Of a DNA stretch of 64,000 nt, positions 5,043 to 58,160 are shown piece by piece. The translations under genes were made by a program, and so were the position numbers. The notes below the pieces were generated by a model that saw nothing but the letters and a program-made list of their open reading frames with translations, did no database searches and was not told the DNA's origin. The DNA is taken from assembly GCF_902459465.1 (NCBI RefSeq), contig NC_047069.1, positions 9,548,001-9,612,000 of the forward strand, in the 5' to 3' direction. Within the stretch, counting starts at the first letter, position 1. Each line of letters begins with the position of its first letter. Source of the DNA: Asterias rubens (taxonomy: Eukaryota).

Positions 5043-6336
5043 TTAGCCATTTACAATGAAAATTATTTACAAATAAAACTTCTAAGACAGGAGGTACGTT
5101 TCATTACTCATGTAAAGATCTTTAAAATTTCTGATAAAAACTACAAAAACACCAATTGCCCTATTTCATAAAGCTGCTGAAGCAGTAAAATACTGCTTAA
5201 CACATTTTAAGGAGAGGCAAAAACGGTAGTGTTTTAGTCACATGGTCCATGTGACATGATTGTTTTAGCTGGTACCCTTAGACTGGTAAGCATAATTTCA
5301 TTGTGCTTAATTACTTTTAAGCACACTATGTTTGTCTTTGAGGTACAAATTGTGCTTTTGAATTTTCATTTTACTTGGATTTAATCAATTCAATTTTGTG
5401 GAAAGTTTTGTACTTCAGGAACCTAGCTATGCTTATATAATACCTTAGAGCATTTATAGACAAATTGGGTGGGACTCGAACCCACAACAATCTGCATGGT
5501 TGAGCAGATGTCATACCTTACACCAACAACATTGCCTATCAATACTGAAAGGTATTGCAGTAGCTTCACATAGGGAAGTCGCTGAAGCACAAAATATAAA
5601 AACTGAAAAACATATAAAGATTTTTTACCAAGTAAAATTAGGAAACTTCAGCATAAGTTGAACCCAGAACCATCCAAGTGAGATCAATGGAAGTACAAAA
5701 TGCATACAAGTCGATGGTGTACAAAAAAGGCTTTTGGGAAAAGACTTTGGCATGGCATTCCAATCCTTTTAATGTGTTAAAGAAAAATTTTCTATGGGAT
5801 TTGAGACATTGCATGGTGAGGTATCGATATTTATTTGGTTTGTGGTAACACCATGTGTTTTGTCTACTTGCAAGGTAGATTTTGTTCTTGCTATTTATTG
5901 TACTATCACAGAGTAGATTTTCAGGAGACTTCTCTGTTCTGAAAAGAACTGTCCTGCCTTTTAACTACTACCTGGGCGGAAGGTAGAAAATCTGCCGGTA
6001 ATACTACTTAGGCTAATAGATCGCTATATTAACTTCACTAAAATAAAGTGAGTGCTTAATTGGTCTTAGCCATTTACAATGAAAATGATTTACTATTTAA
6101 ACTTCTAAGACAGGAAGTACGTTTCATTACTCATGTAAAGATCTTTAAAATTTCTGATAAAAACTACAAAAACACCAATTGCCCAATTTCATAAAGCTGC
6201 TGAAGCAGTAAAATACTGAATAACACATTTAAAGGAGAGGCAAAAACGATAGTGTTTTAGTCACATGGTCCATGTGACATGATTGTTTTAGCTGGTACCC
6301 TTAGACTGGTAAGCATAATTTCATTGTGCTTAATTA
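5043..6336. repeat. 271-bp direct repeats (5043-5313, 6066-6336) flanking a 752-bp insert
   Basis: Both copies run TTAGCCATTTACAATG...GTGCTTAATTA, are the same length and are near-identical. Insert 5323-6065 matches 12107-12710 plus ~13530-13683. Confidence 0.9.
5455..5545 (-). mobile_element. Degenerate tRNA-derived SINE head (further copies at ~12245-12330, ~13995-14085 and ~14420-14490)
   Basis: The minus strand has B box GTGGGTTCGAGTCCCACCC and aligns by eye to the tRNA-like head at 44631-44707. Confidence 0.6.
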
Positions 6337-12000: not shown

Positions 12001-12860
12001 AAAGTTGCTATTTGTTCTTCACCAACTAAATAATGAAAACTGCCTGAGCATATTTTCTCTAACTCATTTGCATAAGTTTTGGTGAAAAAAATACTGAAAA
12101 GGAAGTACACTATGTTTGTCTTTTGGGTACAAATTATGCTTTTGAATTTTCATTTTACTTGGATTCAATCAATTCAATTTTGTGGAAAGTTTTGTACTTC
12201 AGGAACCTAGCTATGCTTATATAATACCTTAGAGCATTTATAGACAAATTGGGTGGGACTCGAACCCACAACAATCTGCATGGTTGAGCAGATGTCATAC
12301 CTTACACCAACAAGATTGCCTATCAATGCTGAAAGGTATTGCAGTAGCTTCACATAGGGAAGTCGCTGAAGCACAAAATATAAAAACTGAAAAACATATA
12401 AAGATTTTTTACCAAGTAAAATTAGGAAATTTCAGCATAAGTTGAACCCAGAATCATCCAAGTGAGATTAATGGAAGTACATAATGCATACAAGTCGATG
12501 GTGTACAAAAAAGGCTTTGGGAAAAGACTTTGGCATGGCATTTCAATCCTTTTAATGTGTTCAAGAAAAAATTTCTATGGGATTTGAGACATTGCATGGT
12601 GAGGTATCGATATTTATTTGGTTTGTGGTAAAACCATGTGTTTTGTCTACTTGCAAGGTAGATTTTGTTCTTGCTATTTATTCTACTATCACAGAGTAGA
12701 TTTTCAGGATATCCAAGAAGATATGCAGAGTTTTTCCTTAAAGTAAACATGGGAAACTAAGACAGAAATTGAACCCAGAACCGTCTCATAAGTTGAACCA
12801 GGAATGGAAGCACACGTACAAAGCTGGTTTACAAATATACAAAGTTTTTTAACCAAGTAA

Positions 12861-13301
12861 AAGTAGGAAACTTCAGCATAAGTTGCAACCAAGAACAACC
12901 AAGTGAGATCAATGGAAGTAGGAAACTTCAGCATAAGTTGCAAACAAGAACAACCAAGTGAGATCAATGGAAGTAGGAAACTTCAGCATAAGTTGCAAAG
13001 AAGAACAACCAAGTGAGATCAATGGAAGTAGGCAACTTCAGCATAAGTTGCAACCAAGAACAACCAAGTGAGATTAATGGAAGTAGGAAACTTCAGCATA
13101 AGTTGCAACCAAGAACAACCAAGTGAGATCAATGGAAGTAGGAAACTTCAGCAGAAGTTGCAACAAAGAACAACCAAGTGAGATCAATGGAAGTAGGAAA
13201 CTTCAGCATAAGTTGCAACCAAGAACAACCAAGTGAGATCAATGGAAGTAGGAAACTTCAGCATAAGTTGCAACCAAGAAACATCCAAGTAAGATCAATG
13301 G
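12861..13301. repeat. Minisatellite, 8 x 55 bp
   Basis: The unit AAGTAGGAAACTTCAGCATAAGTTGCAACCAAGAACAACCAAGTGAGATCAATGG starts at 12861, 12916, 12971, 13026, 13081, 13136, 13191 and 13246. Confidence 0.97.
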
Positions 13302-13679
13302 AAGAACATGCAAACAAAGTTGCTGGTGTACAAAAAGGATTTTGTGAAAATACTTTGGCGAGACATGTCAATCATTTTAATGTGTTTAAGAAATTGTTTC
13401 TATGGGATTTGAGGGATTGCATGGTGAGGTATTGATATATATTTAGTTTGTGGCAACACCATGTGTGTAGATACTTGCCAGGTTGAGTTATTGCTATAAT
13501 CTATATTCTACTACCACAGAGAAGATTTTCAGGAGACTTCTCTCAAGTCCTCTGTTCTGAAAAGAACTGCCAAGCTTTTTAATTACTACCTGGGCGGAAG
13601 GTAGAAAATCGGCCGGGAATACTACTTAAGCTAATAGGATAGTTTTTAACTTCACTACCTCGAAGTAAGTTCTTAATTG

Positions 13680-21744: not shown

Positions 21745-23760
21745 TTCACATGTGCCGTGTCGATCGGACCAACGCCGAAAAGAAGAGTATTTTGCTAGAG
21801 GAGGATCCCCGGATCCAACAACAGCCGAATGGAAGGGAAGGATGCAATGCCAAAATAAAGAGGGTAGTGGATCATTGGAAACCCCACTATTACATGTGCC
21901 GGGTCAGTCACCAACGTCGAAAAGAAGAGTATTTTGCTAGAGGAGGATCCCTGGATCCAACCATAGCCGAATGGAAGGGAAGGAGGCAATGCCAAAATAA
22001 AGAGGGTAGTGGATCAATGGAAACCCTACTAATATGTGTGCCGGGTCAGTCAGACCAACGCCTGACAAAAGAGTATTTCGCTACAGGAGGATCCCCGGAT
22101 CCAACAACAGCCGAATGGAAGGGAAGGAGGCAACGCCCCCCCAAAAAAGGGTAGTGGATCAATGGAAACCCCACTATCACATGTGCCAGATTGGTCGGAC
22201 CAACGCCGAAAAGAAGAGTATTTCGCTATGGGAGGATCCCCGGATCCAACCATAGCTGAATGGAAGGGAAGGAGGGAACGCCAAAATAAAGAGGGTAGTG
22301 GATCAAACCCATCTATCACCTGTGCCGGGTTGGTCGTACCAATGCCGAAAAGAAGAGTATTTCTCTAGGTCCGTCAGACTAACGACAGACAGAAGAGTAT
22401 TTTGCTAGAGGAGGATCCAACCATAGCCGAATGGAAGGGAAGGAGGGAACGCCAAAATAAAGAGGGTAGTTGGGCAATGGAAACTCCTCACATGCGCTGG
22501 GTCCAACTAACGTGGGGCAATGGAAACCCTTTCATACCTATTCTTCCATGATTGGTGTTCCCAGTTCTTTTATGTGCAGTGACAGAATCCACTTGGTATT
22601 GTTTGGGTGAGAAATTACATCCACAACATTTGCCTTTATGTTCTATAGTTGCGATAACGTAACCCTCCTCTCGACGGCCGAAGGGAGGTGGGTTAGGTTA
22701 TCGCAACTACTTTTCCAGGGCTGTATTCCTGCCTAGACCACCAAGCAAGGTGGAAGCATAAGAAGTCTTTTGGGTTCTTTTACGTGCACTACCTATCATA
22801 TTTTTGAAGCCCCCCACGAACCCCTTCCCCCTACTCTGTGACAGGTTGTAACGTGCTACAGGTTAACGCTAGCAGGATGCACCTGACCTGACAGGTTGTG
22901 ATGGGATGATGTGAGCTGGTCATGAGAAATAATGTAACATTGGTGTACAGAAGTGGGATTTGGATCTACTATAATTTAGAAGAATTTAATATAACAACGA
23001 TTGAACGCCGGGTCGGTCAGACCAACGCCGAAAAGAGGAGTATTTCGCTAGAGGAGGATCCCTGGATCCAACCATAGCCGAATGGAAGGGAAGATTCGGC
23101 AATGCCAAAATAAAGAGGGTAGTGGATCAATGGAAACTCCACTATCACATGTGCCAGGTCAGTCAGACCAACACCGGAAATAAAAGTATTTCGCTAGAGG
23201 TGGATCCCCGGATCCAACCATAGCCGAATGGAATGGAAGGAGGGAACGCCAAAATAAAGAGGGTAGTGGATCCATGCAAACCCCACTATGTGCCGGGTTG
23301 GTCGGACCAACGCCGAAAAGAAGAGTATTTCACTAGGTCCGTCAGACTAACGACGGACAGAAGAGTATTTCGCCTGAGGAGGATACTCAGGATCCAACCA
23401 TAGCCGAATGGAAGGGAAGGAGGCAATGCAAAAAATAGAGAGGGTAGTGGATCAATGGAAACCCTACTATCACATGTGCCGGGTTGGTCGGACCAACGCC
23501 GAAAAGAAGAGTATTTCGCTAGAGGAGGATCCCCAGATCCAACAACAACTGAATGGAAGGGAAGGAGGCAACGCCGAAATAAAGAGGGTAGTGAATCAAT
23601 GGAAACCACACTATTACATGTGCCGGGTCAGTCACCAACGCCGAAAAGATGAGTGTTTCGCTAGAGGAGGATCCCAGGATCCAACCATAGCCGAATGGAA
23701 GGGAAAGAGGCAATGCCAAAATAAAGAGGCTCGTGGACCAATGGAAACCCCACGGTCATC
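21745..23760 (+). repeat. Two arrays of ~139-145-bp purine-rich tandem repeats (~21745-22500, ~23005-23760)
   Basis: TGTGCC unit starts at 21751, 21895, 22037, 22182 and 22321. Core: GAAAAGAAGAGTATTTCGCTAGAGGAGGATCCCCGGATCCAACCATAGCCGAATGGAAGGGAAGGAGG. Confidence 0.92.
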
Positions 23761-24748
23761 ACATGTGCTGGGTCCAACTGACTAACGTGGGGCAATGGAA
23801 ACCCTTTGGGTTTATACCTATTCTTCCATGATTGGTGTTCCCAATTCTTTTAAGTGCAGTGACAGAATCCACTTGGTATTGTTTGGGTGAGAAATTCCCC
23901 CTATTTGCCTTTATGTTCTATAGTTGCGATAACGTAACCCTCCTCTCGACGGCCGAAGGGAGGAGGGTTAGGTTATCGCAACCACTTTTTCCAGGGGTGT
24001 ATTCCTACCTAGACCACCAAGCAAGGTGGAAGCATAAGAAGTCTTCTGGGTTCTTTTACATGCATGACCTATCTTATTTTTTGATGAAGCCCCCCACCAA
24101 CCTCTTCCCTCTACTCTGTGACAGGTTGTAACGGGCTACAGGTTACCGTTAGCAGATGCACCTGACCTGACAGGTAGTGATGTGATGATGTGCCTTAAAT
24201 AATTGCATTATGAAATAGCTGTATGCAAACTTAAGTTATTCCTCTTAAAGTGGATGTACACGCGTACATGTACTTATATAGCTTACAAGGTACCAAGAAG
24301 TCAACAACTTCCCATGAAATAATATTGCTTGAAATCATGTATGTTTTTGAAAATGAGCAAAACAAATAGTTTTGATCTTGTGAGTTGCTTGATCAAAAGT
24401 AGCGTGTGATTAAAATTAAGACATTAATCAAGATATTTGCATTTTAAAACAAATAGTTCTGAAAAAAGTAATGCGATTGGTTTTGATCTTGTGAGTTGCT
24501 TGATCAATAACAAAATATTAAAATTAATAACTTAATCAAGTTATTTGCCTTATATACTTTTATTCATCGTACTTCCACAAATACTATACATTTTCACATG
24601 ACGGTACATAGATGGTATTGGTCAACAAATTCTCATGGAATAGTAGTATTGATTGAAATCCTATATGTATTGGAAAAAGAGCAAAACAATAGGTTTTGAT
24701 CCTGTGAGTTTATTGAAAATAAACACAAATTAGCCAAAGTTAATTTGA

Positions 24749-30000: not shown

Positions 30001-30336
30001 TTCACACAGGGGCATTGCTTGGCAACAACAGCGCAGAATAGAGTGAGATGGAGATTTGGTGAAAAGGCTTTCCTCCTGTAGTGGAGTGAAACACTCTCAA
30101 CGATACCACTGATTATACGTGTATTCTTTAAAGTTTCATGACTCTGCTTAAAAATTGCAACCAGCAAGCTATGTACTTCCACTAAGAGAATTTCTGAAGT
30201 TCAATTCTGCTTTAATCCAGGGTGTACAGCAAACTATGTACATTTATCACTTTTCAAGCTTTAAATGACAACCATGCATAGGAATATATCTGCATACAAA
30301 TCCGGGGGTGCACAGTAACAGCAAACTATGTACATG

Positions 30337-31751
30337 TGTAGAGATGGCAAAACTGATACACCTTCCAAGTGTAGAGAGGTGTGTGGATTATCAGTGTTAA
30401 TTGCCCCCCCCCCCCTTTTAATTTTGTAATAGAACTTTGACCCTACCTTTAGAATTAATGGATCAGTCCAAGATTGCCACATCAGCAGAGATACTCTGGA
30501 CAGGATGTTGGTCTGGTCATTCTTATACCAGTGATGACCAGTAACAGACATTAAAGGAGTTTCTTCTAGATATATATCGTGACAGTGGTTTTTCATTATT
30601 CTTTACAGGTATGTTGATTTTATTTTCTTTATTAATTCCATTGTGCTTTTTAATAGAACTATCTAGATTATTGAAGTTCATTATTTGATTTGTGTTATGA
30701 ACTTGATCAAAACAATGTAACTTGAAGACAGTTGGGAGTTTTCACTCCAAGGTTACAAGATCAAGAAAGGATTTGTTTCAGACTTGGAAGACAGTTGAAA
30801 TGAAGTTTAGAGTTTCCTTTGTTAAGTCATAATGGACAGTGATAATGATTTGATTTAGATGAAGTGAAATTGCTTTCTTTAAATACTGCTTGGACTTTAT
30901 TTAGTATTTAAAGGTTACTTTTATTTGCTAAGGTATCACTTTTCTAAGTTTGCTTTCAAGTGTTAAAGAGTACTTTATTCGTAATATAGACATTCATTAC
31001 TAGTTTCTGTTTGAAGTATTTGTTGGAAAGAACTGTAATGTTCTTTCAGATATATTTTAGTTTGGAAGTATTGTTAACCAGTACTTTGACCGAACTCCAT
31101 GTATAGAGAATATTGGTAGCCAAAGACCATTGTTTATTGGAGGTTCAAGATCTTCCTATACTAGACCACACAGTGTGAGCCCAGTGGCTCTGAAGTTGTT
31201 TATTGGGTGGTGTTGCAGTAGGGCAGGAAGTGAGATCAGAAGGCAAGAACACCTATTTTCTTGTGAATACTTAAGTAGCTGTAGGCAAGAACACCTATTT
31301 TTCTTGTGAATATTTAATTATCTATGCCTTGATCATTTACTGCAGGGACAAGATTGTAATGATTATAGGTTGAACCCCTGTTGAAATGAGTTATTGTGTA
31401 TGCATTTAAAGGTGTTTGTTTTATGAAGTTTATTCTTTGAACCATTTTTGAACCGGATTTAGAGATCAGTACATTTAATTTAGTTATTTGTTAGAAGTAA
31501 GTTTGAGTTTTATGCATTACATCTTCAGTAAAGTAAGTACATAGTTTTAAGATTGACAAGTACTTAATGTTTTGATAATAGTTGATGTAACGTCATTCTT
31601 ATACCAGTGATGACCAGTAACAGACATTAAAGGAGTTTCTTCTAGATATATATCGTGACAGTGGTTTTTCATTATTCTTTACAGTGGTCATCAACCCGAT
31701 TTTAATGTGCTCCGTTTAGATTGCCAGTTTGGTAATTTGGCGGGTGCAACA
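30337..31751 (+). repeat. 5' LTR (1415 bp)
   Basis: TGTAGAGATGG...GGGTGCAACA. It differs from the 3' LTR by one C in the poly-C run, GG/AA at 30786-87 and T/C at 31100. Confidence 0.98.
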
Positions 31752-31753
31752 TT

Positions 31754-31771
31754 TGGAGGCACGAGAGGGAT
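31754..31771 (+). promoter_or_regulatory. Primer-binding site, 18 nt, tRNA-Thr-like
   Basis: TGGAGGCACGAGAGGGAT lies 2 nt after the LTR. Its complement ATCCCTCTCGTGCCTCCA has exact tRNA 59-76 geometry. The ...GTGCC-U73-CCA end resembles eukaryotic tRNA-Thr. Confidence 0.8.
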
Positions 31772-32044: not shown

Positions 32045-33367
32045 ATGGAAGACCTCATCAAGACTTTGGAGAGAGTAATCCTTGGACTCAGCAGCCTGTC
32101 CATCGACCAACTCATCCAAGTATGCACACATCTAGATCTTGAGGCAGAGGACGTGGAGAAAACACCAAAGGGCCGTCTTCGGATACAACGGCGACTACTG
32201 GCTCACATTAACAGTGAGGAAGTGGAAGACAGTGACGACGGGGGAGTGGAGCTACTCCAGACATTAGACAGCTTCATGAAAGACCTCAAGCAAGAGTCCG
32301 AAGATGAACCAGTCTCCATTGACCCAGCTGAGAAGAAAGACGACCCAAGCAGCCCACCTAAGCTTGAGAGTACAGAGCCCTCAACGACACAGCCGTCTGC
32401 AACACCGACCGATGTGGCCCACTTGCTGAGACGGGAGTTCAGAATATCCGGTCAGATAGGAGAGCCAGGCCAAAAGGATCGTCTTTCCTTCACCAGTCTT
32501 GCCAACCAAATCGAGGCTGGATTGGAGAAAAGCTACCCAGACAGAGATATCGTTCAAGGAGTGATCCGAGCTATAGCACCAGGATCATCACTCCGAAGCT
32601 ACCTGGAAGGACGAAGTAAGATCTCTCTGCCCAGCCTTCGCCGAATTATAAGAGCACACTACCAGGAGAGAGATGCGACAGATCTCTATAAACAACTCTC
32701 CCAACTGACCCAAGGAGCCAAGGAGTCGGCCCAGGCTTTCCTGTTAAAGGCATTTGACATTCGTCAAAAGGTCCTTTTTGCTAGCCAGGAAAGTGATTCC
32801 AGACTCCGCTATGACCCACACCTAGTGCAGGAGATGTTTCGCCATACGATATTGACTGGCTTGAGGAGCGATGCCATCAAGACAGAACTCCGGCCCTACC
32901 TGGATGAACCAAAGACGTCGGACGAATTGCTCTTCGAAAAGATAAATGTGTTCTCCAGCCTAGAAGAAGAAAGACGGCAGAAACTCACCCAAAACAAAGC
33001 AACCACAGTGAACGAGATCTGTGAAGTAAAGGACAAACAGACCATGCCAGCGAAACCAGGGCTACTGATGACAGAGATTGCAGAGCTGAAAGCAGGGATT
33101 GCAGAGCTGAGTTCATTGAAGGGCCAAGTAGCAGCACTCCAAGAATCTTTCCAGAGGACACCACAACAGCAACCAGCACAATTTGATACATCCTCATCCC
33201 GAGTTCGTCGAGGATGCCACAAGTGTCAAGAAGCGGGAACCGGTTCTGACTGTGACCACTGCTTCAAGTGTGGGTCATCAGAACACTTTGCTCGTGGATG
33301 TCGGAGAAGCAGAGACCGTACACACCAGGGAAACGGTTCAGGGTTACGTCCGCGGGACAGGGAGTAG
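32045..33367 (+). CDS. gag: Gag (440 aa) with C-terminal zinc knuckle
   Basis: Intact ORF with CX2CX4HX4C ([14 protein letters not shown]) preceded by a Cys-rich CHKC...CDH motif. The [20 protein letters not shown] capsid region is typical of aquatic-animal Gypsy Gags. Confidence 0.95.
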
Positions 33368-36300
33368 CCAGGAGAGAAAGACAGTCCCAACCACACCAGC
33401 AGGATCGAGACCCCCGACCCATAACTTCAATATGCCACATCACACCCAGACAGCATCGGAAGGTGACAAACCTCATCGGACCAAGATGTACTGTAGATTG
33501 CTACCTCAATAATGCATCTACCACTGTGTTATGGGATACCGGAGCCCAGGTTTCCTTAATCAGTTCACAGTGGCTTCACCAAAACCTACCAAATGAACCA
33601 ATCCGCCCCCTTTGTGATCTTCTTCAGTCCGAGAGGAACTTGGATCTCCGAGCTGCTAACGACACACCAATCCCCTTTGAAGGCTGGATTGAACTCGAGT
33701 TAAGAATGAAGACGCCTCGGACGTGCACACCAGTAGTGTTTCCAGCATTGATCACTCAAAATAGGATCCAACAACCGATTATTGGATACAATGTGATCGA
33801 GACCCTTGTACATCACTCAGGTGAAGACGCCAGCAGTATTCTTGGAGGAGCAATGAAGAACTTGGAACCCACTAGAGCTGTAAAGTTGGTTCACTTGATT
33901 CAGGCTAATGATCCAGAAGAAGTCTGCAGTGTCATATCAGGGAGGCAGAACATTATGATACCCAAACACAGCAACTTTGGTATTCGATGTTTGGCACGAG
34001 CTGGCTTGACAAACGGCAAGATAGAAGGACTGTTCGTGCCAGACGTTGAACAGCAATGGCCGGAAGGTCTTCAGGTAGAGGAATCAGTGGTGAATCTCCA
34101 AACAGGTACGGCGACCCCAGTCGTAATCCGAGTGACGAACTCCACAGACCGAGACATCATGTTGAAACGACGTAGTCTGTTGGGCCACATACAGCTTGTC
34201 AATTCAGTATGCCCCATGGAACCCTCTATGCTGAAGACATGGACACCATCACCCAAGCAAGGAGAAACCACTGTTTCCAGTATCTCCACCGAGAAGGAAT
34301 GGATTCCCCCTGTTAACCTGAGTCATCTGACAACCTCACAGAGGTCTGCTGCTGAGAAGCTTCTTCGAGAGGAGTCAGCCGCTTTTGCCAAAGATGACTC
34401 GGATCTGGGACGTGTCCCCGACTTGAAGATGGAGATTCGGCTACGTGATGAGGAACCCGTCAGAAAAACGTACATGTCAATGCCCCGCCCACTGTACCAG
34501 GAAGTCCGGACGTACCTAGCAGACCTAATCAGCCGTGACTGGATCAGGAAGTCTTCTTCTCCGTACTCATCACCAGTAGTGTGTGTTCGGAAAAAGGATG
34601 GAAGTCTCAGACTCTGTGTTGACTACCGAGAGTTAAACCAGAAAACCATTCCTGATCGTCAGCCAATCCCTCGAATCAAGGACGTGTTGGACAGCCTAGG
34701 CGGCAACCAATGGTTTTCAACCCTCGACCAAGGTAAAGCATATCACCAGGGTTTTATGTCAGAGCAAAGTTGTCCACTCACAGCTTTCATCACACCTTGG
34801 GGACTTTACGAATGGGTCAGGATTCCATTTGGGTTGACAAATGCACCAGCAGTTTTCCAGCGATTTATGGAGACTTGCCTTGATGGACTCAATGGTGAAA
34901 TTGCCATGACCTACCTTGACGATGTTTTGGTGTTTAGCGACAACTTTCAAGCCCACCTTGATCATCTACGGCAGGTCCTGAAGCGTTTACAGAAGCATGG
35001 TGTAAAGTTAAGACCCAACAAGTGCGAGTTCTTTCAAAGTGAAGTACGCTACCTGGGTCGACTGGTATCAGCAGAAGGTCATCGACTTGATCCATCCGAC
35101 ATATCTGCTGTTCGGTCCCTCAGCGAAAAGCGACCAGAGACTGTTGGAGATGTCAGGAAGTTACTTGGACTACTGGGCTACTACCGCAGTTACATCCAGG
35201 ACTTTTCTCGCATCGCACGACCATTATATGACCTACTGAAAGTGACACCGAGTGAGGAGCAAACGACCCAGAAACCCAAAGCCAAGGGAAAAGCAAGCTC
35301 AAAGATGAAGTCTGCGCAAAAGCTTTCGAAACAGAAAGTGGAGTGGAAGGATCATCATCAAAAGACACTTGAGGAGATTCTTGGGTTTCTTATGGCACCA
35401 CCAATCATGGCCTTTCCAGACTACAATGAGCCGTTTGTAGTTCACACTGATGCATCGAATGATGGACTGGGTGCAGTACTTTACCAACGACAGAAGGGGA
35501 AGATGAGAGTCATCGCATATGGGTCCCGTACCCTCAGCCCGGCGGAGAAAAACTATCATTTCCATTCTGGTAAGCTGGAATTTATGGCACTAAAATGGGC
35601 AGTGACCGATAAATTCAGAGACTACTTGTACTACTCATCCGCTTTCACCGTGTTCACCGACAATAATCCCTTGACATATGTGTTGACTTCTGCCCGGCTG
35701 AATGCAACAGGTCATCGATGGGTGGCGGAGCTAGCAGACTTCAATTTCAACATAAAGTACCGCCCTGGAAAGAGCAATGCAGATGCAGACACCCTCTCGA
35801 GATTACCACTGGACATGGAGAACTACATGAGAACATGTACGACAGAAGTCTCCCAGGCAGAATTGGAGACCACAGTCCATGCCATCGAAGCTCAGAGTCA
35901 AGGAACCGTCACATGGGCTTCTGCGATCACCACTGATCCTGAGACGTTGCTACCTACCACATTACCAGGTAATCAAATGTTCAGTAAACGTGATGTACAG
36001 CGTGCGCAGAAAGAGGACCAGTGCCTAGCCAGAGTTATCTTCTTCCTTCAGAGAGGTCAACGTCCAAGCAAGCGAGAGTTAACAAAGGAGCATCCCGATA
36101 CCATTGCCTTACTGCGTGAATGGGTTAACCTGAGGCTGGAAGAGGACATCTTGTTTCGAGTAAAGGGCAATAGACACCAGATGATCATTCCCTTGACGAT
36201 GCGACAAACCGTCTACAAGGAGCTCCATGACAACATGGGACACATTGGTGCTGGGCGTGTCTTGGACCTTGCCAGAAACCGGTTCTACTGGCCCCACATG

Positions 36301-37992
36301 CAACGAGATGTTGAACATTATTGCTCCAAAGTCTGTCCTTGCCTGAAAGACAGAAAACCCGCACAACACACGAGGGAACCCCTGGGAACAATCATCACGA
36401 CGGCTCCCTTTGAACTGATTTCCATTGATTTTCTGCATTTAGAACGGAGCAAGGGTGGATTTGAATACATCTTGGTGATTGTTGACAATTTCACCAGGTT
36501 TGCCCAGGCATATGCAACCCGAGATAAGTCGGGGAAAACTGTAGCTGATAAAATCTTCAATGATTTTGTTCTTCGCTTCGGGTATCCTCAGCGAATTCAT
36601 CATGACCAAGGAGGAGAATTCGAAAACAAGATGTTCAAACGACTCCAACAACTCTCGGGTATTATACCTTCCAGGACGACCCCATACCATCCGCAGGGGA
36701 ACGGTCAATGCGAAAGACTGAACAGGACTCTCCTCGGTATGTTGCGGACCCTCACTGAAGCCCAGAAATCTAACTGGAAGGAGTCACTCCAGAAAGTGGT
36801 ACATGCATATAATTGTACTACTAGCAGTGCAACAGGGTTCTCACCGTTCTTCTTGTTGTATGGACGCTCCCCTCGTCTACCAATTGATGTTGCATTTGGC
36901 CTGGACCCAAAAGCTGGACCGAAAGAAGAGGACCACAACCAATTTGTGAAACGGTGGAAAACACAGATGGAGGAGGCTTACTTGATTGCAGAATGCCAGG
37001 CAGCCAAGTCGACTGAACGAGGAAAGAAGTATCATGACCAGAAGGCCCACAGTACCGTTCTCCAACCGGGAGACCGTGTCCTGATCCGCAATGTTGGACG
37101 CCATCTTGGACCAGGTAAACTCCGCTCCTACTGGGAGGACAATGTCTACATCGTTGTTGGTAGAAAAGGAGAACACTCTCCAGTCTATGAAGTGAAGCAA
37201 GAAACGGGTAACATGAAGCACCGTGTAGTTCATCGCAATCTCCTTCTCCCCTGCAACAGCATGAGAACAGATGTTGAACCCAAGAAGACGCTTCCCCAAC
37301 CACAGAGACGAATTCCAAAGCCCAACCGTCGACGAATCTCCAATGAATCCAGTCCGGCAACGAGTGACGACAGTTCAGATGAAGAAGTTACCATGGTAAT
37401 GAACACTCCATCTGATCCAAGACCGTTCCGAGCAATGGAGGAAGTGAACCAGCCCACATTGAATCCTGCAGCAGTGCCCTTCCCATGGAATGCACCAGAC
37501 GTGGAGCACACACCTTCTATTGAGCCCCTAGAGCTTATCGATGGTGCTGGGGATAACCAGAACATTGAGGAACCTGATCCTCTGATAACTGCATCCGACA
37601 CACCTGAGACAATTTGTGAGGACACTCCCGCTGAACAGCCCCCACAACCAGCTGTATCCGACGCACCGGAGCCGAGTGATGACACTTCCACAGAACAGTC
37701 CCCACAACCAGAACCGGAACCAGAAGCACCCTCTGAAGGCAGACCAATCAGACAACGACATCCTCCACAACTGTTTGGGTATGCAAGTCTTGGTGAACCT
37801 TCGATGCAGAGCATGGACCCTCGAGTGGCTGCTGTTCAGGGATATCCTGTCCCACCTCAGTGGATGCTGCCTATGCAAATGCCTATGACACCATGGTTGA
37901 ATCCTTATGTTCAGCAGGGTTCACCTATGATGCCACCGGCATGGATGTGGCAGCCAGCTCCACCAGTAGTACGAGATGCACAGAGTTATTAG
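33268..37992 (+). CDS. pol: Pol polyprotein (protease, RT, RNase H, integrase), -1 frame relative to gag
   Basis: WDTGA (33535), YLDD (34912), TDAS (35446), HDNMGH...CPC zinc finger (36226), D,D35E core ([18 protein letters not shown]) and a GPY/F-like SPFFLLYGR. There are no stops over 1574 codons. Confidence 0.98.
33328..33369 (+). promoter_or_regulatory. Programmed -1 ribosomal frameshift signal
   Basis: G GGA AAC (33328-33334) is in the gag frame. After a short spacer comes a stem-loop GGTTAC/GTAGCC enclosing GTCC-GCG-GGAC. Confidence 0.85.
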
Positions 37993-38409
37993 ACGAGGAC
38001 GCAACAGCATGACGAGAATCCAGGCTAGCAACGCAATGAAGTTCCCACAGCAGAGTATGGACGGGACGTAGGAACATCAATCAGTAGCTTCAATGTGAGG
38101 ACTACCCACCGGACTGACTTGATGTTCACTAGCGCTGTTGCATAGCTTTCATCCAGTTCGAATCTATTTCTTTATCTTCTTCACGAGAAGTTCGGAGATG
38201 AGGGGATGTGGAATTAGCTACTCCATTAAACTTTTCTCCAACTAGTTGCCTTGATGAGGAGGAATTGTCAAGTAATTAGTGTGAGTATTTAACTCTAGAA
38301 ATGGACACTCAATGAACTGTTCCTTGGATGATAAGGATTGCCGTTAGAGGTTTTGTTCATAAATTGATCTTAATGTATTATTTGTAATGTTGAGGACAAC
38401 ATTTATTTT

Positions 38410-38420
38410 GAGGGGTAGTA
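38410..38420 (+). promoter_or_regulatory. Polypurine tract
   Basis: GAGGGGTAGTA immediately precedes the 3' LTR TG. Confidence 0.8.
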
Positions 38421-39834
38421 TGTAGAGATGGCAAAACTGATACACCTTCCAAGTGTAGAGAGGTGTGTGGATTATCAGTGTTAATTGCCCCCCCCCCCTT
38501 TTAATTTTGTAATAGAACTTTGACCCTACCTTTAGAATTAATGGATCAGTCCAAGATTGCCACATCAGCAGAGATACTCTGGACAGGATGTTGGTCTGGT
38601 CATTCTTATACCAGTGATGACCAGTAACAGACATTAAAGGAGTTTCTTCTAGATATATATCGTGACAGTGGTTTTTCATTATTCTTTACAGGTATGTTGA
38701 TTTTATTTTCTTTATTAATTCCATTGTGCTTTTTAATAGAACTATCTAGATTATTGAAGTTCATTATTTGATTTGTGTTATGAACTTGATCAAAACAATG
38801 TAACTTGAAGACAGTTGGGAGTTTTCACTCCAAGGTTACAAGATCAAGAAAGGATTTGTTTCAGACTTAAAAGACAGTTGAAATGAAGTTTAGAGTTTCC
38901 TTTGTTAAGTCATAATGGACAGTGATAATGATTTGATTTAGATGAAGTGAAATTGCTTTCTTTAAATACTGCTTGGACTTTATTTAGTATTTAAAGGTTA
39001 CTTTTATTTGCTAAGGTATCACTTTTCTAAGTTTGCTTTCAAGTGTTAAAGAGTACTTTATTCGTAATATAGACATTCATTACTAGTTTCTGTTTGAAGT
39101 ATTTGTTGGAAAGAACTGTAATGTTCTTTCAGATATATTTTAGTTTGGAAGTATTGTTAACCAGTACTTTGACCGAACTCCACGTATAGAGAATATTGGT
39201 AGCCAAAGACCATTGTTTATTGGAGGTTCAAGATCTTCCTATACTAGACCACACAGTGTGAGCCCAGTGGCTCTGAAGTTGTTTATTGGGTGGTGTTGCA
39301 GTAGGGCAGGAAGTGAGATCAGAAGGCAAGAACACCTATTTTCTTGTGAATACTTAAGTAGCTGTAGGCAAGAACACCTATTTTTCTTGTGAATATTTAA
39401 TTATCTATGCCTTGATCATTTACTGCAGGGACAAGATTGTAATGATTATAGGTTGAACCCCTGTTGAAATGAGTTATTGTGTATGCATTTAAAGGTGTTT
39501 GTTTTATGAAGTTTATTCTTTGAACCATTTTTGAACCGGATTTAGAGATCAGTACATTTAATTTAGTTATTTGTTAGAAGTAAGTTTGAGTTTTATGCAT
39601 TACATCTTCAGTAAAGTAAGTACATAGTTTTAAGATTGACAAGTACTTAATGTTTTGATAATAGTTGATGTAACGTCATTCTTATACCAGTGATGACCAG
39701 TAACAGACATTAAAGGAGTTTCTTCTAGATATATATCGTGACAGTGGTTTTTCATTATTCTTTACAGTGGTCATCAACCCGATTTTAATGTGCTCCGTTT
39801 AGATTGCCAGTTTGGTAATTTGGCGGGTGCAACA
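38421..39834 (+). repeat. 3' LTR (1414 bp)
   Basis: Line-by-line comparison to the 5' LTR gives 3 substitutions and one 1-bp indel. Confidence 0.98.
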
Positions 39835-42016
39835 CATGTATAACTTCTCATAGCTTTAAATGATAGACATGCATTAGGAATGATTCTGGTGTCTAATTCT
39901 GCTTACAAATTCAAACCAGGGTGAGCAAACTATTGTAGTTTCAAAGACACCAGTTAGCCACTAGGCAGGGTTTCCAAATTGAAAACCGGATCCCATGAAA
40001 GAGCCAGACACCTCCAGAATGATTTACCATGGTGTGTTTATTTTCAGCATTATGATAACCAACCCAACAATTTTGTTTCTGCATGTTACAGTGTACGTCC
40101 ACAAATATTTATAGATTTACACAGGACTTATATGGTGTTAATATGGTAATGGTCAACAACTTTCTTTTGACTAGTATTGCTTGAACAAAATAGTTTTGAT
40201 CTTATGAGTTGTTTGATCATAACTTTAATCAAGTTATTTGCCTCATTATACAACTACAACAGTTTTGAAAAATTAGTATAACAACTAGTTTTGATCTTGT
40301 GAGTTGCTTGTTCAAAATTAACATTAAAATTAATAACTTTAATCAAGTTATTTGCCTTATAAAACAACAAGTTTTTCAGGTCATGGAAATTACAAATTAC
40401 CAATATCGTCCTTGTGCTCTAAGTTTGTACATTGAAGTTGACAAATTTTCATTAAAAAAATGAACTCCTCCAAGTTCGTGTTTTGTTCATGGCTTATTTT
40501 TCTTCTATTAGTTTTTGTGAACAGTATTTCAATCACTTGTATTGTGCACTACTGTTTCATAAGGAAATTTATTCCATTGTTCCAATTCTCCAAACAACTG
40601 TAGCTATTTATAATTTTGGTTGTAGCTTAGTTTGGGACATTTTCTTAAAACTGATTTGATGATGATAAACTGAAGTTAAATAACTTTTTTGCCAGGGAAG
40701 AAAAAGAGTAACTTGGTGGTGTCTTTTCTAGTCTAGATGGCAACATGCATTCCTCGTTATGAAAAAGGCTCAAGTAGAGGGCCTTTAAAGCATCAACACT
40801 GTACTAGTTCATGTTTTTTGGTTGTATGTGTGTTGAGAAAACATGTTTTAAATGATTTATATTATCAAGAACATAAAAAAATAATTAACATCAACAAACA
40901 AATGAAATGGTTACATTCCTCACCTAAAAAAATATCATAATAATCAACATCACGGTGATAACACCCACACGATATTGCTTGGGTGGGAATCAAATTCAAA
41001 ACCTTTCCTACATAATTGTTTCAGATTACAAATAGAACAGTTTAATTATACATCTTCAAAAACTTCATCAATAGTAAGCAGGTATGTAAAATTAATTTTC
41101 ATAAAGGATACATTATGATGTGAGACAATGGAAAATGGTGTCATCATATCCTCATTCTGCTGTAAACTGCAGTCTTGATAAAACGGCAACGGCAACCATG
41201 GCAATTGTCATTAATCATAATGTGTGTCACTGTCAATCAGACTGTCAACGGGCCCAGGTCCTAACCATTTCTGACTGCCACCCCTTAAGAAGTAAAATTA
41301 CATCCTTAAATGTTCAGAGAGATCAAAAGAACACATGAAAAAGACTCTTTGAACTCTTAAAAGTGTCGAAGTCGCGAAAAGTAAACATTTTTGTCCGGGC
41401 TGACTCCATTGTTTACCTAAACGCCGTGGTTACTACATGCAACTTGCACGGCAAGTCCGGAGCTCCCGTGCGAGAGTTCCGGACTTGCCTCAAATTAATG
41501 TCCTCTTGAAGTTTCTCGATCTATTTTTACAACATTCAGTAAAAAGTGTTTTCAGCTACTAATTCCCTGACATGGGTATTTAAAAAAAAACTAAAGCCAA
41601 ACCCTTAAAAAGTGGCAGTCAAATGGAGACGGTCATCGCAGGGCAGTGTTGTCGTTCAATCTTGAAGGACCCCGGCCATTTTGTCACTGATTTCTAATCT
41701 GTACACAGCGCCCCGTTGCTGATTGGTTTCCAAGACCGAATCTGCGTATCAATAGTAAATGGCTTTTGTGTTTTTGGGTGGACCCCGGATTGAAATTGTA
41801 TGCCCATGTCCGAATTAGTGGAAGTATTATAGGATGGCCTTACCGTGCAAAAGTTAATATCAGTGGTTTACGGCAACTTCAAAATGAAACTCAATGGTTT
41901 TTACTTTTTATTTTTCAGGGAGCTGAGACTAGAAGTTGAATGGTCCCTGAAAAAAGCAAACATCCCCTAAATTGCACAGTCCATGTTTTTTATTACGCTT
42001 TTATTCATTTGTTTAA

Positions 42017-42293: not shown

Positions 42294-44496
42294 TTAATTG
42301 TATATCGCAAACAACTACAAATTACGGAGGGTTTTGTTTTCTGTACATCAAAATTGCCGCTGTCGTAGTGCTTTTCAAGTTCTAATCCCTGGGGCGAGTT
42401 ATTCAAATAAGTGAACCAAAATTACAAGTAAAAAAATATTGGTTAAATTTATGGTTTTGTATTTCTCACAGTAAATTTTATGACATAATGTTAAACGTGT
42501 AACTCGCACTTAGCCTCGGTATTTGCGGCTCATTTTCAAACAATTTCTTAATTAATTATCCTTTGTTTGTTTGCTTTCCAATCATTTATAGCTATAAAAT
42601 GTTAATATTACCAAATAAAAATGTTTAGGTTACTGCTTAAATTTCAGTATTCGTTGGAATAAAATAACAAATTCACCTTCAGAAATGAGCAAAATTTAAT
42701 TGACTTTATTGTCACCACTCGAGCGCCCTCACTTGCCAGGTGTGTGCCAATCAAGTTATCGATCAGGGAGGGGCTTGACTTTTTTTTTTTGGGGGGGGGG
42801 TGAGAACTAGTCTTTTGTGACCAAGCCTTCAGCAGCATTTTCTGCTACACAGCTTCTGGGTTTTTTTTTTTGGGGGGGGGGGGTGAGAACTAGTCTTTTG
42901 TGACCAAGCCTTCAGCAGCATTTTCTGCTACACAGCTTTATGAAATTGATTCCAAATACATTTGGGATCCTGTGTGTTGTTCAGCTATTTTTCCCATAGA
43001 ACTTCCTTGTGGGATCAATTGTTCCTATTGAGATTGCCTTGTGGGATCCTTTGTTCTGTTGTTGGGATCCATTGTAATTAGGACCTACATTCAATGTAAG
43101 GACAGGCACACACATACTGCCTAGTCGCATACACTACGTTAACATCTTTTGCACTTACACTTTTACACATTCTTTAATACTGTAAAAAGCACTGCGCGGA
43201 CTTTGTGTAGGCTTAAGTCCCCAAATAAAGTGGAAACTTCGTATTAACACACCCTCACATATGGCAGTTAAGAGGAAACTTTTGTTGCTTAATTATTCCA
43301 TTTCCTAAAGAAATCCTCTGTGGGGTTGTATAGTAGAACAAAGACAACTTATAGGTTGCATTTCTTCCGTTGCAAAAATTACCCCGTAGATGCACACAGA
43401 GATGATGGAACACCTAAAGTACAATGGAAGCTTTTGTTAAATCTTTGTTCAAATGATTATCACAGCCAGGCACTTTTACTCTATACTTAATGCTTAGTCG
43501 GTGACGTAGAAGTCTTGAAAAACATGTTAATGGCACAGAGGGACACCTTTGGTAATTGTCAAAGACCAGTATTCTCACTTGGTGTATCCAAACATAATAA
43601 GAATAAAAACAACTACGTGAGTTTTTTCACTCAGTTGGTCATCCAAGTTGCAAGAGAATAATGAAAACAAAAAACAAAAAAATTTTTTTTTGTATGCCTA
43701 ATAAATGGCGACAAGCCATAAGTCTTTTAGTATACGAGTGAGAAATTGCCTCTCTCAAAAACCTTGTTACTTTAAAAAGAGCCATCTCTCACAATAATTT
43801 ATACTATCAACAGCCAAGTAAGTTTTATATTGACAATTAATTTTTAATTGAGTAATTACCAGCGTTCAGTGCCTTTAGGCATTGAATTACAACATGCCAG
43901 GACAGGGTCATTGGGAGTAAAACCACGTTAATACAAACTCAAATCCCGACAAGAAACACCTTATTTTGATAACAGTTGTCATAAGTTTTGTTTATTATTT
44001 TGCTCTGCTGCAAAACACATGAAAATGTCAATTCATTGATTCACACTTCTTATGAAATATATGTTGAATGAATGGCTAGAACCTTCACACAGTCATATTG
44101 TGCAGTTTAATGTCTATCATCAATATTACATTAAAATCTTAAAACATGACAACACTGCAATTAATATTGTTAAAAAACACTATCTTAATTTTGTTTTTAT
44201 CCATACACCGATGTGTACTCAGTACTTTCCCCGAGTCCTGTAAAAAAAATATGACAGGCATCACTGTACAGGACTCGGGAAAGTACTGAGTATACAGTGC
44301 TAACACACATCCGTGTATGGGTAAAAACCAAAAATTAATATTCTTTATCCCCGATGCAAATTTAACATCTATTATATAGTTGCGGTACCTGCTATATACA
44401 GTGCTAACACACATCCGTGTATGGGTAAAAACCAACATTAATATTCTTTATCCCGATGCAAATTTAACATCTATTATATAGTTGCGGTACCTGCTA

Positions 44497-44828
44497 TACA
44501 GTGCTAACACACATCGGTGTATGGGTAAAAACCAACATTAATATTCTTTATCCCGATGCAAATTTAACATCTATTATATAGTTGCGGTACCTGCTGCCAA
44601 AACATAGGATTCAAACTGCCTCTAGCTACCGGGCAACCTCGGTAGTCTAGATGGTAAGACACTGCTCTAGAATTGCAAGGGTCGTGGGTTCGAATCCCAC
44701 CCGAGTAACATGCCTGTGATATTTTTTCACAGGACTCGGGAAAGTACTGAGTATATACAGTGCTAACACACATCGGTGTATGGGTAAACCAACATTAATA
44801 TTCTTTATCCCCGATGCAAATTTAACAT
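44497..44828 (+). mobile_element. tRNA-derived SINE-like element with ~75-bp terminal direct repeats; extra tail copies at 44293-44496
   Basis: 44636-44707 has 72-nt tRNA geometry (D stem GTCT/AGAC, T arm GTGGG-TTCGAAT-CCCAC) with mismatched acceptor and anticodon stems, and a T6 run at 44722-44727. A minus-strand copy lies at ~53270-53395. Confidence 0.8.
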
Positions 44829-47859: not shown

Positions 47860-50790
47860 TTAAAATACGTGAATATTCATGCTGCATGTACGTAGGTTCA
47901 GTGCATGCACGCTCACTTACGGGCGCACATACATGTAGTACAGTCATGTACATATCCGCCGAAAGGTTTTTGCATAGCCCCGGAAAAGATTGCATGTGCA
48001 AAAGTATCCAGAGCGGACAGTATTGCATGGCGAACACAAATGCATCTGTCACAGGTATGGTCAAATTTCAGATTTGGGGTCAACAAATATTATATGATTT
48101 TAAGGTTCCAATTGATGCAGAACGGACTACTGAAGACATGTTATCAGTCTAGACTGGGCATAAAACCAAAATATTCAGATTTATTGAGAAATTTGTGAGT
48201 TTGGATTTTTAGTCCAAAATGAAATAATTTGACCATGCCGGTATAGTCAAATGTTCAGATTTGGGGTCAACAAATTTCCGATTATTTAATGATTCCCAAT
48301 GATACAGAACAGACTACTAAAGACATTTTATCAGTCGAGACAAGGTATACAACCAAAATGGTCTGATTTATTGTGAATTTTGTATGTATGGATTTTTGGT
48401 TCGAAATAAAATAATTCGACCATGTGCCAGTATGGTAAAATATTCAGATTTGGGGTCAACAAAGTGCCGATGATTTCATGGTTCCCAAAGATACAGACCA
48501 GACTACGGACGACATTTATCAGTCCAGACTGGGTATATAACCAAAACGATTTAGATTTATTGAGGAATTTGGGAGTTTTGATTTTTGGTCAGAAATGAAA
48601 AAATCTACCATGCCGATATGGTCAAAATTTCAGATTTGGGGTCATCAAATTTCTGATGATTTCATGGTTCCCAATGATACAGAACAGACTACTGAAGACA
48701 TTTTATCAGTCGAGACTGGGTATACAACCAAAATATTCAGATATATTGAGAAACTTGTGAGTTTGGATTTTTATTGCATATGCACAAAAATCCCCTGAAC
48801 GGTTTTGCATATATGCAATAGTGTCCGCCCAGACGCTGCTGCATAATGAAATTGTGTCCTCCCGGACACATTTGCGTATGCAGTTGTGTAGCTCAGAGCA
48901 AAACTGTCCCTGCAGTAAATTAAATGCCCTTGGTCGACGGTACACGTTCGCCATTTTTTTTTTACAAGCTGTATGTAAGAGCATGTCATGAATGACATGA
49001 GAAATACTCATGCTGCATAAACGGAGGTTCAGTGCATGCACGCTTGCTTACGCGCGCACATACATGTAGTACAGTCAAGTACATGTCCGCCAGAAGGTTT
49101 TTGCATAGCCCCATACACGATTGCATGTGCAATTGTATCAGAAGCGGACAGTATTGCATGGCGAACACAATTGCATCTGGCAACGGTATGGTCAAATTTC
49201 AGATTTGAGGTCAACAAATTTCCAATGATTTCATGGTTCCCAATAATACAGAACAGACTACTGAAGACATTTTATCAGTGCTGACTGGGTTAATGAGTAA
49301 AAGTTCAAGATATATTTGGATTTTTGTGAAGTTCTCAATTAAACTTCCTCTATAGTAGGTTCCAGTTAAATATTGGAAGACAAAATCAACCAAGTGTTGT
49401 CCCATTGGTTGCCATTGTTGAAAGTATTTGCAGAGACTTCTGCTTTTTATGGGGAAAAAGAGTTATTACATGTGCATATATAATCAAGATTACTAGCAGA
49501 AAAGCAAACAGTAAGCATGGATTACCTTAAGGCTATATGCTGTATGCATCATCAGAGGCGCAGAGACTCTTGGACTATATGGAAAGCAGCAAGTAGTACA
49601 AGTGGAATGGTGCAGGTAAGATTGCAGGGCGGGAAGAAGAGGCGTAGGGTGTAGAGGTGGCAACTGTCTTGTCTCAGCTTTTCCCTGCAGTTTGGAGGGA
49701 AAATGACCTAACACAGTGTTATTAAAACAGTTCAGAATAAATTCTTAAACTGATTTTTGACCAAGCTTTATTAAAAAACCAATGATTTTGTTTAGGAAAG
49801 ATCAAATAATTTGTTTAAAGGATGAATTATATCCTGTATATTTCAATAATGCAATCAGGAAGTAGCTACGATATCTCAAAGTGAGTTCAATGTGTGAAGA
49901 TTTTGATAATACAGATTGTCCTAAATGTTGGTACAATGGACCCTTCCCATGAAATATGCTAATTACATTCACGCATGCGTACAGACCCTGTTGGTTGGCA
50001 AACGCCATAGAGTTGTGCACTAAGCAGACGCGCAATCGTGTCTGCGTCACGCACCCATTAGCTGTGTACAAAACAGCGCGATGTTCCCTCATTTTGCCAA
50101 CCAAAACGTTAGTGCGCACGCGCTACGTGCAATTTACATATTTCATGGCAAGGGTCTATTACATTTCAAGTGTAACAGTCCAAAGTGTGCGGTGCTAGTA
50201 TTTCAAGTCTGTATCTAGTATACAATACTTCTTGTACCAATTTAATTTCACTTTTCAGTTCACACAGTTTCACGAGTCATCTAAATGTTATTGTTGTGAA
50301 CCATTTTGATGGTTGAGAGGGTGGGCTAACACTTTACCAAAATCTCCAACAACAAAAAAGCTGAAAATTGCCTGCTATTGAGAGTTGGCTGACCAAATTG
50401 TCCAACGCTGAAAATGTTTCCAGTGAAACAGAGAGAGTGTTTGTCTCTTAAAGGTTGACTCGCTGATGAGATCAGGGGAAGTCGGAAGGCATGAAGACAG
50501 ACAAACATTTGAGAAGCACCCAGTGAAATTCAGTCACCCATCAGTGGCACAGGGATGAAGTGTTCAAATGATACAGAACGGAATACTGAACACATTTTAT
50601 CTCTGTGGAAAGGGTATATGAGAAACAATTTGAGATTTATTGAGAACTTTGTGAAGTTGAATTTTTAGTCAAAAATATAAAAACATCTGTGATGCCGGCA
50701 TCAAAACATTTTCAGATTTTGGGTCAAAAATGTTCATTGATTTTATCAAAATGATACAGAATGGACTACTGAAAACATTTTATCAAGGCA
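47860..50790. repeat. ~185-bp satellite (four tandem copies 48055-48775, more at ~49185 and ~50560-50785) with a duplicated ~200-bp leader (47860-48060, 49000-49190)
   Basis: The core GGTCAAATTTCAGATTTGGGGTCAACAAAT..GATACAGAACAGACTACTGAAGACATTTTATCAGTC repeats. An inverted copy lies at 52271-52420. Confidence 0.85.
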
Positions 50791-57194: not shown

Positions 57195-58160
57195 GAAATA
57201 CCCAAAACACGAGGGTACTGAAGTACATGTATGACCAATTTGAAGGTTGCAAAACACTACTGAATATGTGTCTGTAATATTAGGACCAATGGGAGACTTA
57301 AGATTGCTAGGTGGCAGCAAACACGAGGGTACCGAAGTACATGTATGACCAATTTGAAGGTTGCAAAACACTACTGAATATGTGTCTGTAATATTAGGAC
57401 CAATGGGAGACTTAAGATTGCTAGGTGGCAGCAAACACGAGGGTACCGAAGTACATAGACCTTATCGCAAATACCAATGCACACGCGCAGACTGTTGAAT
57501 GAGGTGCATTGTGGGATATATATGGATCAAATTTGGATACCAGCAAGACCACAATGCACCTAATTCCTAGCTTTACGCGCGCGCCCCTGTATTTGCGAAA
57601 AGGTCTATGTATGACCAATTTAAAGGTTGCAAAACACTACTGAATATGTGTCTGTAATATTAGGACCAATGGGAGACTTAAGATTGCTAGGTGGCAGCAA
57701 ACACGAGGGTACCGAAGTACATGTATGACCAATTTGAAGGTTGCAAAACACTACTGAATATGTGTCTGTAATATTAGGACCAATGGGAGACTTAAGATTG
57801 CTAGGTGGCAGCAAACACGAGGGTACCGAAGTACATGTATGACCAATTTGAAGGTTGCAAAACACTACTGAATATGTGTCTGTAATATTAGGACCAATGG
57901 GAGACTTAAGATTGCTAGGTGGCAGCAAACACGAGGGTACCGAAGTACATGTATGACCAATTTGAAGGTTGCAAAACACTACTGAATATGTGTCTGTAAT
58001 AATATTAGGACCAATGGGAGACTTAAGATTGCTAGGTGGCAGCAAACACGAGGGTACCGAAGTACATGTATGACCAATTTGAAGGTTGCAAAACACTACT
58101 GAATATGTGTCTGTAATATTAGGACCAATGGGAGACTTAAGATTGCTAGGTGGCAGCAGA
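57195..58160. repeat. 114-bp minisatellite (~7 near-identical units, one with a 3-bp insertion)
   Basis: CTAGGTGGCAGCA occurs at 57307, 57421, 57687, 57801, 57915, 58032 and 58146. Confidence 0.97.
57457..57606. mobile_element. 150-bp MITE inserted in the minisatellite, AT target duplication
   Basis: TIR AGACCTTATCGCAAATAC...GTATTTGCGAAAAGGTCT. The empty site GTAC-AT-GTATG is visible in neighbouring units. Confidence 0.85.

Follow-up and report, generated by a model that had tools for sequence, protein, structure and literature searches.

The 64,000-nt stretch of Asterias rubens DNA that we analysed (NC_047069.1, positions 9,548,001 to 9,612,000 of the forward strand in assembly GCF_902459465.1; hereafter the window) contains one complete Ty3/gypsy (Metaviridae-type) LTR retrotransposon. 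The 5' LTR (30337-31751, 1415 bp) and the 3' LTR (38421-39834, 1414 bp) are 99.7% identical, differing by 3 substitutions and one indel in a run of C residues; both start with TG and end with CA, and the element is flanked by a 4-bp target duplication, CATG, at 30333-30336 and 39835-39838. A primer-binding site (PBS) region lies at 31752-31771, next to the 5' LTR, and a polypurine-rich tract at 38406-38420, next to the 3' LTR. Between them are an intact gag gene (32045-33367, 440 aa) with a CCHC knuckle and an intact pol ORF (33268-37992), which lies in the -1 frame relative to gag with a 100-nt overlap. Pol has the PR-RT-RNase H-IN order of gypsy elements, with Pfam matches to RVT_1 (residues 440-597), RT_RNaseH (718-825), Integrase_H2C2 (974-1027) and rve (1045-1142). 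An Rfam scan of the element found nothing relevant, only a sub-threshold miRNA-like hit in gag.

The window is repeat-rich and has no long host ORF. It contains satellite-like tandem arrays at 57205-58158, 21746-23774, 48054-48773, 3365-3848 and 44291-44595 (units of 114, 142, 187, 188 and 100 bp), as well as a 608-bp direct repeat (5319-5926 and 12103-12709), 97% identical and 6784 bp apart, with no long ORF between the copies and a 55-bp tandem array (12861-13304) after the second. This pair is possibly the LTR pair of an old or non-autonomous element.

Each LTR of the Ty3/gypsy element is built as P(179)-A(93)-X(983)-A(93)-Q(67), in which the 93-nt repeat A occurs twice, as A1 and A2. The four copies of A (30516-30608 and 31592-31684 in the 5' LTR, 38599-38691 and 39675-39767 in the 3' LTR) are 100% identical, with spacings of 1076, 7007 and 1076 nt; an exact repeat of 93 nt is far beyond chance. 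A BLAST search with the LTR found no other copy of any LTR piece within the window. A1 is followed by GTATGT at 30609, and A ends in a pyrimidine tract plus CAG (TTTTTCATTATTCTTTACAG). The sequence CAGGTATGT occurs three times in the 64 kb, and two of those occurrences are these LTR sites. ATTAAA is found at 30550 and 31626, and TATATAT at 30571 and 31647. Removal of the 1076-nt segment from the first GT to the end of A2 (30609-31684) would leave a 339-bp LTR. The observation in the initial annotation, an exact 93-bp repeat bracketing a GT...AG intron-like segment with these motifs, is thus confirmed in every detail.

The remaining parts of the LTR have their own landmarks. P (30337-30515) is presumed to be the promoter or U3 core, and contains a C-run (30405-30416; 12 C in one LTR and 11 in the other) that is shared by most carrier lineages examined (L011-L013, L019, L021, L022 and L027; L numbers designate the related contigs, described below) but is lacking in the outgroup L020. 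Judged by eye, there was no consistent TATA-like box upstream of A1 across lineages. Q (31685-31751), the U5 end, carries a conserved ATTTTAATGTG-type motif. X (30609-31591) is unique sequence with 31% GC and no ORF over 59 aa, and X plus A2 together hold 18 ATG. A hairpin within X (stem 31059-31097) folds well above shuffled sequences (z = -3.5 for 31030-31110); all 18 pairs are kept in the window, L014, L015 and L016, mostly invariant, with two one-sided U-G/U-A/C-G changes, and it could be a protein binding site or an RNA signal. X also contains a 38-nt motif duplicated in tandem (31243-31280 and 31285-31323), which includes a short inverted repeat and is 92-95% conserved in L015, although the elements are only about 65-70% identical overall. 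By contrast, A has no excess secondary structure (z from -1.05 to +1.29), and is therefore not a TAR-like hairpin. To ask if X arose by read-through of tandem LTRs (X = Q...P), we aligned the ends of X locally against P and Q in four lineages; the alignments were no better than those of shuffled sequences, so that this origin is neither shown nor excluded.

To determine if this design is a one-off, we collected related copies by three routes. First, the exact gag protein of the window is encoded on 15 metagenome contigs, which are 99% identical in DNA, and every one that resolves the LTR carries the long form (L001 and L007 whole, L002-L004 in part). Second, Pol relatives from a word search were traced to their contigs; this search also showed relatives of 47-52% Pol identity in fish and frog genomes. 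Third, a scan for the 20-nt PBS found four more contigs, while the PBS pattern had no hits in collections of viral and prokaryote genomes. Most relatives come from metagenome assemblies of unknown hosts, from marine plankton series to judge by the record names, and such contigs can be chimeras of family members. However, the window and L027 are contiguous genomic copies with both LTRs, and L026 confirms L019 from another sample.

The P-A-X-A-Q design occurs in about a dozen related lineages, down to ∼50% Pol identity. In L014 (93% DNA identity to the window), the last 43 nt of A1 are on the contig and 43/43 equal A2. In L016 (about 71% DNA identity), the repeat is 68 nt, with 67/68 identical and a spacing of 1082; in L011 (68% Pol identity), the copies are identical at 73/73. 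In L012/L024 (67% Pol identity), they match at 117/117, although the two copies lie on two contigs of one family. L019 and L026 (52% Pol identity) have a repeat of 96 nt, and L026, an independent sample with both LTRs, has four identical copies with a spacing of 1079. L021 (51% Pol identity) has 97/97 with a spacing of 984, and L022 (49% Pol identity) has 64/64. L027 (47-50% Pol identity) has a 72-nt repeat in four identical copies with a spacing of 1900, on one contig that holds both 2136-bp LTRs and flanking DNA and whose record name suggests a long-read assembly. Its much longer X (1828 nt) contains tandem repeats of its own, of about 70-105 nt (L027 4200-4391 and 13191-13361); the intron-like segment can thus grow without loss of the flanking design. 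L015 and L017 show X plus A2, the rest being off the contig or missing from that copy. Only L020 (49% Pol identity) has a plain LTR, of about 195 bp. There are always two copies of A, 984-1900 nt apart, rather than head-to-tail units of variable number.

In a neighbour-joining tree of Pol, the carriers fall in both halves of the clade and L027 is basal; the design is therefore old. The PBS region is identical in L011-L017, but the design as a whole goes with four different PBS types (L019/L026, L021, L022 and L027 versus the window), so the primer was switched several times without changing the LTR plan. X is alignable over about its first 500 nt between the window, L014, L015 and L016, and short blocks are shared among L011, L016, L019 and L021; X was therefore inherited, not inserted repeatedly. 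Its length is near constant (887-1014 nt) in five lineages.

Two apparent exceptions are likely to result from assembly. L012, a circular-looking contig of 7071 bp that closes on itself through A, and L023, whose 3' LTR reads P-A-Q plus flank, first looked like families without X, but L024, from the same family, shows A1 followed by GTATGT and X. The contig ends of L012 and L013 fall at the borders of A (L013 starts 54 nt before the CAG and ends 54 nt after the start of A), at distances that would fit the assemblers' word sizes, although for L013 that size was assumed. We infer that the assemblers skipped a loop: the A-X-A unit is a self-loop in de Bruijn graphs, so short-read assemblies silently drop it and this architecture will be under-reported.

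The donor-like sequence after A1 is CAG|GTATGT in seven lineages and CAG|GTAAGA in two, with positions -3 to +3 and +5 invariant in 9 of 9. The two variants differ from each other, yet both fit the metazoan 5' splice-site consensus of U2-type GT-AG introns, a pattern that selection on a splice site predicts. In 12 of 12 lineages, A ends in CAG, preceded by a pyrimidine fraction of 0.71-0.88 compared to an LTR mean of 0.52. A TGAC-type, branch-point-like motif lies about 25-35 nt upstream in most lineages of the window's subclade (the window, L012, L013, L014, L015 and L017, but not L011 or L016), with CTCA/CTAA-type motifs in others. Identity between A1 and A2 stops at CAG in every lineage, with 0-3 chance matches beyond it. 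It starts 0-3 nt before the A of a pyrimidine-C-A in the A1 context (GTCA, TCA or CCA, or exactly at the A in L021, L022 and L027; TCA at 30517-30519 in the window), which is where an initiator would place the first transcribed base. ATTAAA or AATAAA lies inside A at position 26-50, 52-63 nt before the AG, in the window, L012, L013, L014, L015, L017, L019 and L021. In L011, L016, L022 and L027, A has no canonical poly(A) hexamer; instead, one sits in the last ∼10 nt of X, directly upstream of A2 and not of A1, which would place the RNA 3' end inside A2. These assignments of start and poly(A) sites rest on motifs and conservation only. The TATATAT motif is absent from all relatives.

While A is 98.5-100% identical within an element wherever both copies are visible, it is barely alignable between lineages. 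Between the window and L014 (minus strand), the two closest lineages, A (30516-30608 in the window) differs at 17 of 96 aligned columns, about twice as much as X (89 of 996) and Q (6 of 69). In the 43 nt where A1 of L014 can be seen there are 10 differences from the window, and all 10 are shared by its A1 and A2. Similarly, L011 and L016 differ at 21-22 of 77 columns, but the copies within each element differ at 0/73 and 1/68, respectively. More distant lineages share only about half of the aligned columns of A. Since X is homologous across these lineages, the duplication predates their split, and A1 and A2 must be recopied from one another at a rate far above the substitution rate. Selection for function alone would not make every lineage-specific change appear in both copies.

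The explanation that uses every feature, and which we consider about as likely as not, is that X plus A2 (30609-31684) is a real, anciently conserved GT-AG intron inside the LTR of a clade of Ty3/gypsy elements, and that A is its exon 1 plus a copy of that exon at the intron's 3' end. The architecture, its conservation, the motif positions and the concerted evolution of A are shown by our analysis, but transcription start, splicing, poly(A) cleavage and the replication cycle itself are inferred from sequence, without support from RNA. In this view, transcription would start at the initiator-like CA of A1 in the 5' LTR, and the donor after A1 would be spliced to the acceptor at the end of A2. 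This would remove about 1 kb of AT-rich leader with its 18 ATG and yield a leader of A, Q, PBS and gag whose A-Q part has the same sequence as 31592-31751. In the 3' LTR, the poly(A) signal of A1 would be either absent or masked by U1 bound to the adjacent donor, about 55 nt away, so that the RNA runs through X and is cleaved inside A2, upstream of the acceptor AG; that copy of the intron cannot be spliced and is kept. Suppression of a nearby LTR poly(A) site by U1 at a donor, independently of splicing, is documented for foamy viruses (PMC3694450; reviewed in PMC5071671). R would then be the first part of A. Minus-strand strong-stop DNA made on the spliced 5' end, carrying Q and all of A1, would jump to the terminal partial A2 and continue through X, A1 and P, and the plus strand would then copy the whole unit. 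Both new LTRs would again be P-A-X-A-Q, with the new A2 a fresh copy of the old A1. This would explain the identity within elements, the free divergence between lineages, the retention of X and the two fixed ends of the repeat.

There are several difficulties with this model. The same competition between poly(A) site and acceptor exists in both LTRs, and the differential outcome is assumed; the argument is that A1 is a capped first exon in the 5' LTR, whereas in the 3' LTR the donor follows about 7 kb without an upstream acceptor. Strong-stop DNA from spliced RNA has longer homology to the internal A1 of the 3' LTR than to the truncated terminal A2, and thus we expected 339-bp LTR progeny; none was seen, but short-read assemblies cannot show them reliably. 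Occasional jumps of the reverse transcriptase (RT) between the repeats could also homogenise A without the spliceosome. If the model is correct, a natural retroelement uses spliced RNA as a replication template, at least some of the time, and still transmits its intron, because poly(A) cleavage within the copy of exon 1 preserves an unspliced intron that the first strand transfer pastes back in front of the spliced leader. Such a self-regenerating intron, conserved across a wide clade of aquatic Ty3/gypsy elements, remains a tentative proposal that we rate slightly less likely than not. Reverse transcription of spliced RNA normally erases introns, which is why retrocopies and retroviral vectors lose them (PMC2266726). 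The design would be a new solution to this erasure and to the old question of how identical LTRs make opposite poly(A) decisions, and it gives a concrete, testable case of concerted evolution inferred to be driven by strand transfer.

The interpretation in the initial annotation is partly supported. It held that copy 1 acts as promoter and copy 2 as poly(A) signal, giving an R of about 1 kb, that the donor or splicing masks or deletes the 5' LTR poly(A) site, and that spliced RNA is the mRNA and unspliced RNA the genome. It had set as a test whether related families keep the repeat with donor and acceptor while the interior diverges, and they do. Similarly, the ATTAAA is conserved at the aligned place in most lineages, and a donor about 55 nt downstream fits the masking of the poly(A) site by U1. 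TATATAT as promoter is not supported. The long-R cycle itself, with A kept identical by selection or by occasional RT jumps that delete and re-expand the A-X unit, we regard as unlikely. It is compatible with the conserved donor, acceptor and hexamer, with the inheritance of X in all lineages and with the conserved blocks in X, and a long R would replicate faithfully. However, nothing in this cycle recopies A1 into A2, it gives no reason for the repeat to run exactly from the initiator-like CA to the predicted splice junction, and homogenisation by jumps predicts copies with zero or two X units, none of which was seen among the resolved LTRs. The concerted evolution of A and the exact ends of the repeat fit a short R (the first part of A) and reverse transcription of the spliced RNA, at least some of the time.

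More doubtful is a scheme without splicing, in which the working start site is at A2 with its promoter in the end of X, A1 sits in U3, and the donor serves only as a U1 binding site that silences the A1 poly(A) signal so that transcripts reach A2. U1 suppression works without splicing in foamy viruses (PMC3694450), RNA started at A2 would have the same sequence as the spliced RNA, and A, being identical at both places, has the same core-promoter motifs at both. However, A1 would then be a passive U3 segment with no way to stay identical to A2, the pyrimidine tract plus CAG would be unexplained, and in L011, L016, L022 and L027 A1 has no canonical hexamer to silence, yet the donor is kept. A neutral accident, an insertion or RT template-switch duplication in an ancestral LTR, is very unlikely: direct repeats flanking an insert are a classic template-switch scar, but direct repeats are normally deletion-prone during reverse transcription, so retention in about a dozen lineages implies selection, and the donor is invariant, X has conserved blocks and a near-constant length, and A evolves in concert. 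A nested mini-element or solo LTR, which the initial annotation had raised because TG...CA ends can be read at 31586 and 31751, is all but dismissed, since it has no target duplication of its own and no other copy in the window, the X|A2 border is not a terminus in any relative, and the whole design is inherited.

We found no published description of this architecture in literature searches on LTR introns, split-intron vectors and U1/poly(A) control, although the literature covered was partial. Among the closest known cases is the foamy virus LTR, in which the major splice donor lies in R near the poly(A) signal, is therefore present at both ends, and binds U1 to suppress the nearby poly(A) site (PMC3694450); there, however, only the donor is in the LTR and the acceptors lie far downstream, with no acceptor, whole intron or exon-1 duplicate inside the LTR, and we claim no sequence relation. 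In HIV-1-type occlusion of the 5' LTR poly(A) site by the downstream major donor, the analogy drawn in the initial annotation (reviewed in PMC5071671), the logic of a donor masking a duplicated poly(A) site is the same, but that donor lies outside the LTR, so the 3' LTR copy is naturally unmasked; here the donor is in both LTRs, and a second, unmasked copy of the signal (A2) would be supplied instead. Engineered split-intron retroviral vectors (Ismail et al. 2000, as described in PMC3182074) use LTR duplication during reverse transcription to place splice signals so that an intron exists in the integrated copy although the template RNA lacked it; those vectors are man-made, with the donor in the 3' LTR and the acceptor outside the LTR, whereas the present case is natural, with the whole proposed intron within the LTR and a repeat of exon 1 as the proposed transfer homology. 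Penelope-like elements that keep spliceosomal introns (PMC4209133, PMC11167929) also transmit an intron, but are a different class, with no LTR formed by strand transfer and no integrase, and a different retention mechanism is proposed for them. None of these four has a whole intron inside the LTR with exon 1 duplicated at the intron's end. Finally, ordinary Ty3/gypsy LTRs with tandem enhancer repeats also have direct repeats inside an LTR, but those are head to tail and vary in copy number, whereas here there are two copies about 1 kb apart, with ends fixed at a start-site motif and a predicted splice junction.
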